Sequence record: KU726251.1
Strand: one strand, 5' to 3'
Length of the DNA: 64,000 nt
This document shows positions 1,480-4,080 of this stretch, piece by piece. Each line of letters begins with the position of its first letter. Position 1 is the stretch's first letter. The notes under the pieces were generated by a model, which was not told the DNA's origin, made no database searches, and was given only the letters and a program-made list of their open reading frames with translations. The translations under genes were made by a program, and so were the position numbers.

Positions 1480-1572
1480 ATCATGCGGGAGTCAGAAGCA
1501 CGCAAGCTTGACCCCATCAATCGCCTGCGATAACGGGGTAGCGCATCCGTATAAACACGTTTAAAGAATTCT

Positions 1573-1648
1573 GGGGGTATGGCGCAATTGGTAGCGCACC
1601 GGTCTCCAAAACCGAAGGTTCGAGGTTCGAAACCTCGTGCCCCCGCCA
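1573..1648 (+). tRNA. trnW: tRNA-Trp (CCA)
   Basis: Full cloverleaf: acceptor 1573-1579/1638-1644, D arm GCGC/GCGC, anticodon CCA 1606-1608, TTCGAAA T loop, encoded CCA end. Confidence 0.95.
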
Positions 1649-1712
1649 CATTTAGCCAACGAATTCAGGTTCAACACAGAAGACACAGATTTGTCAACTG
1701 TTGGAGAACAAC

Positions 1713-1955
1713 ATGAATTTGTACTTGCTAGAACGAACTGACGATATCGGGTATGATGAATTTGATTCCATAATCGTGGCGGCTCCTACGGAGCAAGCTG
1801 CGTGTGCAATTCCTCCCGACTGTGGTCATTGGATGGACTGCCGCTGGTTACCGAAAGAGCGCTGGGATGAAGGGCTTACCCTGACCGTTACTCTTATCGG
1901 CACTACGCACTATCCTGCTGGGACCGTCGTTCATGAATCGTTCAATGCTGGCTAA
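1713..1955 (+). CDS. small hypothetical phage protein
   Basis: GGAG RBS before ATG 1713; MNLYLLERTDDIGYDEFDSIIVAAPTEQAA. Confidence 0.7.
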   Translation: MNLYLLERTDDIGYDEFDSIIVAAPTEQAACAIPPDCGHWMDCRWLPKERWDEGLTLTVTLIGTTHYPAGTVVHESFNAG

Positions 1956-1957
1956 AC

Positions 1958-1975
1958 AGTGGGCTTCGGCCCACT
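1958..1975 (+). other. UUCG hairpin without U-tract
   Basis: AGTGGGC-TTCG-GCCCACT; followed by further paired sequence rather than a T run. Confidence 0.6.
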
Positions 1976-2224
1976 AACCCTATTCGAGCCATGATACTTA
2001 CTCAGATTGTGCGGGTTGATGTCCCGCATGAGCCGGTAGCAGCTCAGACCTACGGTAAACCGATAAATCCGTAGCAGCCAGGTACACAAAGCACCAGGTC
2101 GCTTGTACAGGATGCTGGGTATCTGACCGGTCATAACCTCATTCGATACGAGACACGTTTATGCATGAAATACTCCAGTACATCAGGATGTTGATTTCAA
2201 ACGTCCGGTTCTGGGTATTCAGTC

Positions 2225-2530
2225 ATGTTTGGTTTACAGGCGATGGGTTTTCCCGTAAGGGCCCCACTTACAGACTGGCGTCTCCACGACAACCGTCCCT
2301 AGGGGACAGGCAAGCACCGGCCCATTAAGCCGCCATGCTACGCCTGTAAATCCACAATCTGATAACCGAATGGGATTGAGTTCCCAGTGTTAGGGTGACT
2401 GTGTGTCACCGTAGGCGCGGTACCTCATACGGCCGGTACGCCACGAATGTACGTGATAGCAGGTGGTGCTTGGAGACGCTAAGACCTGACCTTACGGCCA
2501 GGCTCAGAAGAAGAAGTCCATCACCTGTAT
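2225..2530 (+). ncRNA. candidate structured non-coding RNA
   Basis: Perfect 10-bp helix 2233-2242/2341-2350; 9-bp helix 2460-2468/2519-2527; hairpins 2295-2307, 2371-2386, 2394-2410; no credible ORF. Confidence 0.45.
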
Positions 2531-2573
2531 TCAGAAATGAATTTAGGTTAATTATTGGAAGTGGCGAAATCAC

Positions 2574-2596
2574 TTACGTGATAACTTAGTAGTATG
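2574..2596 (+). promoter_or_regulatory. TTAC-N15-TATG candidate promoter for the downstream RNA/tRNA unit
   Basis: TTAC 2574-2577, TATG 2593-2596. Confidence 0.5.
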
Positions 2597-2640
2597 CAAC
2601 GAACAATACCAGAGTGACTTTACGAGGTTACTGTGGTATA

Positions 2641-2721
2641 TGTCGGTGCGCCGGGCAACGTGTTGCCGCAAATAAGCCCGAGGGAGCTGACTGCACTAAC
2701 ACACGCCGGGATGCACCGGCA
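2641..2721 (+). ncRNA. candidate small structured RNA upstream of the tRNA pair
   Basis: 9-bp closing stem 2641-2649/2713-2721 enclosing CGGGC/GCCCG and GCAAC/GTTGC stems. Confidence 0.35.
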
Positions 2722-2730
2722 CCTTACAAC

Positions 2731-2800
2731 GGCTTTGTAGCTCAGGTAGGTAGAGCAGCCTCTTTGAGGAAGGTCGCCGGTTCGAGACCGGTCAAAGCAA
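2731..2800 (+). tRNA. tRNA-like element / pseudo-tRNA with shortened anticodon arm
   Basis: Acceptor 2731-2737/2793-2799, D arm GCTC/GAGC, T arm GCCGG-TTCGAGA-CCGGT; anticodon arm only 13 nt (CCTC-TTT-GAGG); no CCA. Confidence 0.7.
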
Positions 2801-2881
2801 GAGCAGCGAAGTTAGAGGAATTAACACCCGACTCATAATCGGATATTTCGACGGTTCGAATCCGTCCGTTTGCTCGCCCCA
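2801..2881 (+). tRNA. atypical tRNA with CAT anticodon (Met or Ile2)
   Basis: Anticodon loop CTCATAA 2832-2838, T arm GACGG-TTCGAAT-CCGTC, D arm GTTA/TAAC, bulged acceptor stem, CCA at 2879-2881. Confidence 0.7.
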
Positions 2882-2899
2882 TTTGTGTTATCCTTATCC

Positions 2900-3215
2900 C
2901 GAAGGCATTCGAAATAAGACGCGTATCCACACACGGGTCAAGGGTAACACGAACCACTTCCGCGGTCACCGTGTCCATTGCCGCCTACCTGCATGGGCTG
3001 TCCTCCGACACGGTGACTTCGGGCCAACTTACAGGCCAGGGCCGTTTGGGTTTTTCTTACGCATCCATCCAGAGCCACCTCGCGCCCTAGTCTGTATACC
3101 CCTTTTCTGTTCCTGGTTTGCCAACTAAATCAATTAAGCCTGGTGCGTTGCCCTGGGAACAGAAAAACTTATTCGGTTACACACCGAACCCACCCACGAG
3201 GGATATGTCGTGGAC
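2900..3215 (+). ncRNA. candidate structured RNA or long structured 5' leader
   Basis: Two perfect 11-bp helices (2965-2975/3007-3017; 3103-3113/3156-3166) plus hairpin 3194-3213. Confidence 0.4.
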
Positions 3216-3258
3216 TACCAATAGAAGCAGCAATAGTAGAAGTAAGAAGGAAAGCAAC

Positions 3259-4080
3259 ATGTTTACAGTTAAACGTGTGATTGATGGTGACCGCATTATT
3301 ACCGAACATGAAAAAGTTCGTATCGGTGACCGTAAGTCTCGTGTATTCCGCGAGGCGTTAAAGATGCTCGAGAACGAGCGATTCGACATTGTTGTCGGTG
3401 ATGAAAAGTTAGCCCTTAATCCGGGGTTAAAACGCGTTGCCCCTGATGTGCCTGATCCGAACACCATGCATTTGTCTGATTATTGTAGCTGGCAGCAGCG
3501 CCTGTCTACAAGTCAGCTTTATGCTCACGTATATCTAAGGCAGCTTTTCCCCAACCTTATTATCCCCGATTTGGAAACGGTCGAGGTGTTTAACTGCAAC
3601 GCACGCGAGTTTGTTAGCTACGTGCTAGATAATAAGGGCAACGCTATCTTGGTACTGGCGACAAATTTATGTGAACCAGAAGCCATGGATAGTATCTGCG
3701 GCGAACTTGTTGGTTTCGGTACGCCCTTGGAAAAATTAGGTTGGTACAAGCCGTCTCCTGATAGCGACATGGCGATTATTGTCTACACTCAGGAAGAACT
3801 GCAACAAGTCGAATTGGAGCCTGGTCCATCTATCGAGTTCACCGATGTCCAGGAGCAATCGCAGTGGGTTAACGGTGAGTGCGTTGTTACTGTTTTAAAA
3901 GGCGCTCGCCCTGGCGACCGGTCAGTCGATGAACTGATTGGCGCAATGTGCATCGAAGAAGAATCTGGGTACGATCCTGATAACCAGATCAGTGCCGGTG
4001 CGTTGTACGAACTGTTTTATAAAGGCGACGAAGTCTACGTGGTTAACTCTCACGGTAAGACTACCGACGTCCTTCGCTGA
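3259..4080 (+). CDS. hypothetical protein
   Basis: Start moved from 3118 to ATG 3259 (AAGGAAAG RBS); followed by terminator. Confidence 0.75.
   Translation: MFTVKRVIDGDRIITEHEKVRIGDRKSRVFREALKMLENERFDIVVGDEKLALNPGLKRVAPDVPDPNTMHLSDYCSWQQRLSTSQLYAHVYLRQLFPNLIIPDLETVEVFNCNAREFVSYVLDNKGNAILVLATNLCEPEAMDSICGELVGFGTPLEKLGWYKPSPDSDMAIIVYTQEELQQVELEPGPSIEFTDVQEQSQWVNGECVVTVLKGARPGDRSVDELIGAMCIEEESGYDPDNQISAGALYELFYKGDEVYVVNSHGKTTDVLR

Follow-up and report, generated by a model that had tools for sequence, protein, structure and literature searches.

Dual-function bacterial RNAs, for example SgrS/SgrT, RNAIII/delta-hemolysin and SR1/SR1P, carry a small open reading frame (ORF) and conserved RNA structure on one transcript of a few hundred nucleotides. 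ROOL and GOLLD are large ornate multi-helix RNAs, roughly 500-800 nt long and entirely non-coding; they are often phage-borne and often found beside tRNA genes. The stable RNAs species 1 and 2 of phage T4 (rnaC and rnaD; 119-139 nt, non-coding) also adjoin phage tRNA genes. In hok-type mRNAs, a small ORF for a hydrophobic transmembrane toxin is placed within an extensively folded message that contains long-range helices.

This work examines an element at positions 2225-2530 of a stretch of phage DNA of 64,000 nucleotides (the window), which resembles each of these systems in part. By analogy, it would work most like the dual-function RNAs and has a positional likeness to T4 rnaC and rnaD, and it appears to be homologous to none of the systems compared. 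It is best classed as a new family of structured RNA that is fused to a family of small phage genes with poor annotation.

As in the dual-function RNAs, a small ORF and RNA structure share one transcript, and the structure is conserved beyond coding needs; this is seen in the covariation of a domain in the 3′ untranslated region (UTR) and of several hairpins. Unlike in those RNAs, the structured domain includes the tail of the ORF, whose frame is preserved and whose stop codon falls in a hairpin loop; the element is phage-encoded and lies beside a tRNA cluster, and translation of its ORF is predicted from a sequence signature. No conserved complementarity to an RNA target was found for it. Like ROOL and GOLLD, the element is located beside tRNA genes in phage DNA, in all relatives. 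Unlike these RNAs, it has a core of only about 300 nt, the first 95 nt or so of which are ORF codons, its host range is narrow, and it matches no Rfam model at E values up to 10, other than a 22-bit chance match to the L17 leader at 2391-2441. An Rfam search had been proposed as a check when the element was first noticed, and no family was returned for it: there is no match at gathering score within 1956-2730, and none inside the element in five relatives at E values up to 1.

The element and the T4 species 1 and 2 RNAs are alike in that both adjoin phage tRNA genes, and in two genera the element is probably co-processed with the tRNA gene that abuts it. It differs from them in size (~300 nt) and in overlapping an ORF. 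A covariance model of its 3′ domain only (R1), run with filters off on the T4 tRNA region, found nothing in rnaC or rnaD, with a best score of 12.8 bits elsewhere. The likeness to hok-type mRNAs concerns the small ORF within a folded message, although the long-range helix of the element is unproven; its peptide, in contrast to the hok toxin, is predicted to combine a charged amphipathic helix with a tail that is disordered, and no antisense partner was seen. A neighbouring RNA of about 580 nt (351-930) in the same genome region differs from the element in sequence and contains no copy of the 3′ domain.

Genomic setting and distribution of the element

The window matches the Enterobacteria phage SEGD1 at 100%, with identical coordinates, and the Salmonella phage SPN3US at 99.9%. 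Since the match is this close, the window is taken, by sequence identity, to be the left end of a Seoulvirus jumbo phage genome of about 240 kb. SPN3US serves as a genetic model of giant phages that form a nucleus, and it is amenable to work with amber mutants; most of its genome has no assigned function. In records of the SPN3US type, the element falls within a 775-nt stretch, bounded by the 84-codon gene on the left and by the two tRNA-like genes on the right, that has been left without annotation. New for the left end of SPN3US are a conserved gene that had escaped annotation and a new family of structured RNA; with the tRNA genes and the 580-nt RNA nearby, they make up an RNA gene island.

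Low-stringency blastn matched the stretch in 63 phage records, among them about 34 close Seoulviruses (95-100%) and two divergent ones, SPAsTU and pEa_SNUABM_29 (76-79% over 2008-2724). In phages of Erwinia and Salmonella that belong to Machinavirus, Erskinevirus and Wellingtonvirus, only the core is matched (window ~2230/2311-2525; 68-80%). The conserved portion measures about 215-300 nt (~2230-2535, plus strand) and is thus present in four genera of jumbo phages, Seoulvirus included. In all relatives, it is found on the gene strand, between a block of small genes and the tRNA cluster and immediately upstream of the tRNAs. The tRNA-Gly gene starts about 4 nt past the element in Asesino and phiEaH2, and about 20 nt past it in Wellington.

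As far as the collections scanned show, the family appears confined to these four genera of enterobacterial jumbo phages. Pattern scans of IMG/VR and one metagenome scan gave only sequences at least 97% like known copies, and in 5,426 complete E. coli genomes, blastn with 2225-2540 as the query gave no match at E values up to 10. The copies used for comparison amount to 18-20 distinct sequences; counts given below refer to 18 sequences for the second domain, to 17 for the hairpins and to 20 lineages for the ORF.

The tRNA genes of the region are listed in the table. Within 2225-2530 itself, there is no tRNA or tmRNA call by ARAGORN and no tRNA call by Rfam. In the Rfam alignment, the tRNA-like gene at 2731-2800 has an anticodon loop that is 4 nt short, and the SPN3US annotation lists it as tRNA-OTHER. 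Because relatives carry 5-14 intact tRNAs at this site, with tRNA-Tyr as the first, the tRNA cluster of Seoulvirus looks decayed.

Further to the left, a 7-bp hairpin with a UUCG tetraloop (1958-1975) directly follows the stop codon of the 84-codon gene, and the adjoining segment 1976-2160 is non-coding, yet shows 76-79% conservation in both SPAsTU and pEa_SNUABM_29. The gene that comes first in the record (988-1479) encodes a homologue of HslV-family peptidases (phrog_1040, E 2.9e-38); its relatives occur in about 490 diverse phage records.

Table 1. Positions of the element, its parts and its neighbours in the window
Feature	Position	Strand	Remarks
tRNA-Trp	1573-1648		flanks the element on the left
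84-codon gene	1701-1955		phrog_5444; left border of the unannotated 775-nt stretch
Small ORF	2161-2328	+	55 codons and UAA; ATG-initiated; open in 20/20 lineages
P1, 5′ arm	2233-2242	+	complement of 2341-2350; also encodes conserved F-T-G-D codons
Hairpin A	2252-2261	+	GNRA tetraloop; stem CCC/GGG, CUC/GAG in Machina clade
Hairpin B	2272-2283	+	AGAC-UGGC-GUCU; three pairs with double changes
Hairpin C	2295-2307	+	5 bp, 3-nt loop; hairpin in each clade
Hairpin D	2313-2339	+	outer AGC/GCU and inner CGGC/GCCG stems; UAA 2326-2328 in loop
P1, 3′ arm	2341-2350	+	13 nt past the stop codon
ACAAUCUGA motif	2354-2362	+	near-invariant in 20 sequences
5-bp hairpin after ACAAUCUGA	2371-2375/2382-2386	+	100% of cells pair; invariant, so without covariation
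Hairpin E	2394-2410	+	6 bp, UGUGU loop; covariation
Hairpin F	2414-2442	+	variable stem-loop; ~5 unrelated versions, every one folds as a hairpin
Second domain	2455-2532	+	long irregular hairpin; covariation, minimum-energy fold
Second domain, lower stem	2459-2471 with 2514-2528; extra pairs 2455-2456/2531-2532	+	
Second domain, internal loop	2472-2478 opposite 2508-2513	+	purine-rich; GGAGACG opposite AAGAAG
Second domain, short stems	2479-2480/2506-2507; 2482-2483/2503-2504	+	
Second domain, apical hairpin	2485-2502	+	
TATATG	2637-2642	+	~110 nt downstream of the element; context, not part of the RNA
tRNA-like gene 1	2731-2800		Rfam tRNA 37.1 bits; no ARAGORN call
tRNA-like gene 2	2803-2874		Rfam tRNA 30.6 bits; no ARAGORN call

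Structure of the RNA and its covariation

The element was first noticed in a sequence-only reading, as a multi-domain structured RNA between tRNA genes. The pairings named there are present in the window: the 10-bp helix P1 (2233-2242/2341-2350) is a perfect complement, which can be read directly in the sequence; CCC-GTAA-GGG and GTCCC-TAG-GGGAC are found as hairpins A and C; the 9-bp helix of the second domain (2460-2468/2519-2527) includes one G-U pair, and CC-TTAC-GG is found at 2490-2497. Minimum-energy folds of both domains recover these helices. The folding-energy z-score of 2225-2530 is -2.5 for the plus strand and -4.9 for the minus strand. For the first domain alone (2231-2352) it is -3.0, for the second domain alone (2453-2535) -2.3, and for the middle part (2351-2452) -0.05. 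By simple arithmetic, about 0.05 perfect long-range helices of 10 bp are expected by chance per 306 nt, which is not compelling alone. Folding energy by itself constitutes modest or weak evidence; the case rests on the comparison with relatives.

The strongest covariation is found in the second, 3′ domain, a long irregular hairpin. In this domain, 96.8% of alignment cells pair, with double changes in 11 of the 26 pairs. Its covariation score of 0.362 compares with 0.113 ± 0.015 in shuffled controls (0/500 reach the observed value) and with at most 0.065 when the partners are slid by 1-3 columns. The fold specified for the domain is both the RNAalifold consensus and the single-sequence minimum-energy fold. 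At two positions, G-U pairs are found in 16/18 and 11/18 sequences; on the other strand, these would be A-C mismatches. The conserved G-U pairs therefore identify the RNA as the plus strand and exclude the minus strand. Past the stop codon of the ORF, almost all six frames contain stops in every lineage, so neither a coding 3′ part nor a minus-strand gene is seen there.

The distribution of the changes within this domain is uneven. Almost no variation is seen in the internal loop and the strands that flank it, in contrast to the freely varying stems and apical hairpin. A 2-bp stem is lengthened to GGUU/AACC in pEa4 and Caitlin, where both strands have changed. Differences among close variants, i.e. 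Seoulviruses that are 97-99% identical, are also compatible with the fold. The substitutions 2461 A>G and 2526 T>C form a compensatory pair, and 2461 A>G occurs alone, as G-U, in another close variant; 2500 A>G yields U-G, and 2528 T>C converts a G-U to a G-C pair.

With the R1 model, the domain is detected exactly once in the window of 64 kb and once per genome in five complete phage genomes. A general terminator or repeated signal was rejected on account of this single copy per genome. There is also no terminator-like site on the plus strand within 1500-3300, and the bases past the 3′ domain are not rich in U.

Some copies depart from the common form. Huxley has one additional AGA in the AGAAGAAGAAG tract. 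The Wellington-type copies have lost this tract and most of the loop sequences and keep the closing helix via many double changes; their R1 scores are 48.9 bits, compared to 87-108 bits for the others. The distal face of Hfq binds A-R-N repeats. The AGAAGAAGAAG tract fits such a repeat, and a candidate Hfq site is an idea that its sequence prompts. Two other resemblances were considered and rejected. By eye, the 3′ strand resembled part of the L11-binding region of 23S rRNA, but BLAST and cmscan gave no support and the helix context differs; for a hammerhead-like core, only CUGA is conserved at the position of CUGAUGA.

The hairpins outside the second domain differ in how well they covary. In hairpin E, pairing holds in 88.8% of cells, with double changes at four of the six pairs. 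Hairpin D pairs in all cells (100%, n = 17), with one compensatory change from G-C to A-U in the sequences that have CCAGC/GCUGG. Hairpins A-C recur at equivalent sites in every clade and are partly out of register, hence their poor column counts. The loop of hairpin A is GUAA, GUGA or GCAA; in a close variant, 2256 T>C changes GUAA to GCAA, which stays a GNRA loop. In the form found in the window, hairpin A is absent from Erskinevirus and Wellingtonvirus. At the site of hairpin B, every clade has a hairpin, with sequences that differ (GGAC-GNRA-GUCC in Erskinevirus and Wellingtonvirus).

Selection on RNA structure, which had been suggested from the nested helices and tetraloops of a single sequence, is borne out by the second domain and several hairpins, which stay paired through many double changes across four genera. 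The covariation is thus found in the second domain and in hairpins E and D; it does not extend to the 10-bp helix described as closing the first domain. P1 is present here and forms in the minimum-energy fold of the window sequence. Among the 17 aligned sequences, it is invariant in 10 (Seoulvirus and Machinavirus) and broken in seven (Erskinevirus and Wellingtonvirus), with zero covariation. In minimum-energy folds of the latter two genera, the 5′ strand of the first domain pairs instead with the ACAAUCUGA motif and the sequence that follows. According to these predicted folds, the first domain recurs as a closed multibranch structure, with a closing helix that is unproven and that differs between groups.

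Hairpin F exists in several versions that are scattered mosaic-wise over the genera. That of the window is nearly identical in the Machinavirus pSal-SNUABM-04 and the Erskinevirus Asesino; closer relatives carry other versions. This pattern of sequences suggests exchange of the module by recombination across genera. As regards pairing with the neighbouring RNA or the flanks, one candidate, a 10-nt perfect complement of an invariant motif at 2002-2011, was rejected; it is missing from every relative, and would be a chance or lineage-specific match.

The small reading frame and its transcript

The description of the element as a structured RNA between tRNA genes holds as far as fold and conservation are concerned; the first domain, however, is not intergenic non-coding sequence, since 2233-2328 are the final 32 codons (stop included) of a small ORF. 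This ORF is annotated in no Seoulvirus record. Its counterpart in relatives is an annotated hypothetical protein (gp9 of Machina, ChrisDB and Asesino), which ends where the conserved core begins. Across the 20 lineages, the ORF has 55-69 codons and shares two motifs, W-x-L-x-x-x-W-(F/L)-(T/S)-G and a C-terminal (Q/P)-A-P-x-x-stop.

The two halves of the ORF have evolved differently. In the N-terminal half, differences within clades fall on codon positions 1, 2 and 3 in the ratio 129:72:212; in the tail, the ratio is 81:53:82. Change biased towards the third position is, by this count, a coding signature, and it is seen in the first half only. Between clades, the nucleotides of the first half are nearly unalignable, but an amphipathic helix is conserved. 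The tail keeps its hairpins, and its amino acid sequence is poorly conserved. From the invariant CAGG to the stop codon, the tail measures 93, 96 or 99 nt in all 20 copies, and these contain no stop in frame, compared to 23 and 26 stops in the other two frames. The UAA stop codon is invariant and sits in the loop of hairpin D, to which the frame continues through hairpins A-C. Two codes thus share one sequence: the frame is open through covarying hairpins and the stop codon lies in a loop.

The N-terminal part of the product (residues 5-33) matches positions 12-40 of the 64-position profile phrog_26199 (E 7.6e-5, 24.1 bits), a phage protein family with no assigned function; no Pfam family matches the product. 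AlphaFold2, run on 11 sequences with one Machina protein row left out, predicts a helix over residues 2-26 (pLDDT ~85), and pLDDT is below 50 over 33-51. The predicted helix is amphipathic and rich in Arg and Lys (charge counted by eye), and the tail from about residue 27 would be disordered. The codons at which the predicted helix ends make up the 5′ arm of P1, so that selection at the protein level would stop where selection at the RNA level starts. Taken together, the evolutionary signature makes a strong case that 2161-2328 is a conserved, overlooked gene whose translation is predicted.

RNA-seq was among the checks proposed at the outset. It places the element in RNA libraries, and it is informative only in part: the four runs, from a phage 98-99% identical to the window, are represented by assembled contigs, from which neither strand nor level nor true ends can be read. 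Contigs of all four runs cover the whole 6 kb. They are continuous from ~131-136 (or 1853) past 2163 and the start of the ORF to 2476, 2477 or 2490, which shows that the element is joined to upstream sequence in these libraries. In three of the four assemblies, a contig ends in adapter at one of these three positions, with the next contigs starting from 2585-2621; the fourth assembly spans 2353-2729. The breaks hint at a discrete RNA end within the 5′ strand of the second domain; they could also be a structure-induced artefact of library preparation. Contig depth, a poor measure, gives no sign of an unusually abundant stable RNA.

In all four assemblies, the leftmost contig starts at 131-138 after adapter, which suggests a discrete end of the molecule about 130 nt into the record, i.e. 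a transcription start or a physical end of the DNA. At 2726-2729, the phage used for RNA-seq has extra sequence, with the flanking pieces about 260 contig letters apart; this is possibly one or more additional tRNA genes.

The motif TATATG, which is found downstream of the element, is rare. In intergenic DNA of the 64-kb window, it occurs on the plus strand only at 346, where it marks the start of the neighbouring 580-nt RNA, and at 2637, upstream of the tRNA-like genes. In Machinavirus relatives, TATATGTCGG (as at 2637) is conserved upstream of tRNA-Tyr, about 100-190 nt past the element. From its sequence context, the TATATG at 2637 is likely a promoter for the tRNA-like genes, and the motif likely defines a promoter class for RNA genes. 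In phiKZ, tRNAs depend on the non-virion polymerase (PMC12571901).

Possible functions of the transcript

The reading that we favour, and to which we assign about an even chance, is that the conserved plus-strand transcript is a micro-protein mRNA whose last ~30 codons and ~200-nt 3′ UTR form a multi-helix RNA of ~300 nt, with a dual function. The element would be the 3′ two-thirds of one plus-strand transcript unit of SPN3US-like jumbo phages. This unit would open with the micro-protein gene, encoding a basic amphipathic helix of ~26 residues and an unstructured tail of ~30 residues. The long terminal hairpin would give the transcript a protected 3′ end, and the invariant purine-rich internal loop, together with invariant single-stranded motifs, is probably a docking site for a phage or host protein. 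The RNA part would thus probably be a protective or protein-binding 3′ module. In Erskinevirus and Wellington, with a tRNA gene 4-20 nt downstream, a cut by RNase P would leave the hairpin at the very end of the RNA; a role in protecting the 3′ end, the simplest one for this hairpin, fits best in such phages, with the tRNA gene directly following and RNase P trimming to the hairpin. The transcript may act as a dual-function RNA either whole or after release of its structured part.

Several observations qualify the dual-function reading. A transcription start at the TATG of 2160-2163 would yield a transcript that has no ORF ATG, and an RNA end at 2476-2490 could mean that the mature RNA stops before the 3′ hairpin is complete. 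The weak Shine-Dalgarno match in the window, the contig depths and the non-covarying P1, which differs between genera, also count against it. Binding of a host factor or of its own peptide by the RNA would bear on the handling of RNA by these phages outside their nucleus; if it only stabilises a 3′ end, the element is still of use for annotation and for phage engineering.

The first of these observations is the main argument for a different and, in our estimate, unlikely explanation, namely a free-standing non-coding RNA that acts in trans. In this case, the ORF would be untranslated and its openness a by-product of constraints on the RNA, which would start near 2160-2163, or be processed out, and bind a host or phage factor. 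The ATG of the ORF is embedded in TATG; among the ChrisDB clade, it is part of a complete TATATATG motif, similar to those upstream of the tRNA cluster and of the 351-930 RNA. Late promoters of phiKZ are TATG, with the transcription start at the G (PMC7598289). The conservation of hairpins rather than amino acids in the tail also fits, as does the Shine-Dalgarno match in the window, which is weak. However, the lineages of Machina, Erskinevirus and pEa11 have good ribosome-binding sites of the AGGUGA type ahead of the ATG. The third-position bias and the conserved amphipathic helix belong to the N-terminal half of the ORF, which precedes every helix described, and length changes by whole codons keep the frame through the structured tail in 20 of 20 lineages. 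The RNA-seq contigs also pass 2163 unbroken.

A translation-coupled RNA switch is judged equally improbable. Here, ribosomes would melt P1 and hairpins A-D and halt in the loop of D; the freed, invariant CAGG and ACAAUCUGA strands would then re-pair and affect how the downstream RNA, i.e. the 3′ domain or tRNA precursor, is processed or used, or how stable it is. Such a switch would account for a frame and stop position that are strictly kept when the tail peptide is not, and for a stop codon in a conserved loop just before the 3′ arm of P1. Alternative partners exist: the invariant CAGG pairs with CCUG (P1) or UCUG (ACAAUCUGA), and the two groups of phages differ in their minimum-energy folds in this respect; CAAUC can pair with GAUUG of the next hairpin. 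Every one of these alternative pairings uses invariant bases, however, and hence has no support from covariation, and there is no terminator-like site downstream. Phages of the SPN3US group are reported to transcribe in a proteinaceous nucleus and to translate outside it, which excludes classical transcription attenuation; the compartment of nucleus-forming phages is discussed in PMC12571901.

Alternatively, the 3′ domain may be a processing or termination signal and the rest an ordinary mRNA; this is slightly less probable still. Variants include an RNase III-type site with an internal loop (compare T7 early RNA) and a terminator for a phage RNA polymerase. Either would suit the position of the domain at the end of a transcription unit and its shape, a long irregular hairpin interrupted by an internal loop; the three contig ends are in or beside that loop, and a TATATG that resembles a promoter lies 110 nt further on. 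A general signal would be expected to recur, though, and the domain is present as a single copy in each of five genomes of 240 kb. Its loop sequences are invariant in four genera, far beyond what a stem for cleavage or termination needs, it has no U tract, and the conserved middle part and hairpins A-E are left unexplained.

A more speculative extension of the dual-function reading, which we regard as doubtful, is that micro-protein and RNA form one particle that assembles in cis, with the emerging basic N-terminal helix binding its own 3′ RNA co-translationally. The tail of ~31-33 codons, conserved in length and frame and free in sequence, would serve as a spacer that fills the ribosome exit tunnel; with the ribosome at the UAA in hairpin D, the basic helix would be just out, beside the folded 3′ RNA. 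If true, this would be a phage ribonucleoprotein made in a tRNA gene island; considered alongside the 580-nt RNA nearby, it would suggest that four genera of nucleus-forming jumbo phages share an RNA-based function that is so far uncharacterised.

Finally, a chance structure, a DNA-level signal or a minus-strand gene is very improbable: the z-score is lower on the minus strand and Wellington annotates a minus-strand CDS across the element, but nearly all frames contain stops, the shuffled and slid controls are far below the observed covariation, and the compensatory changes and conserved G-U pairs fit a plus-strand RNA only.
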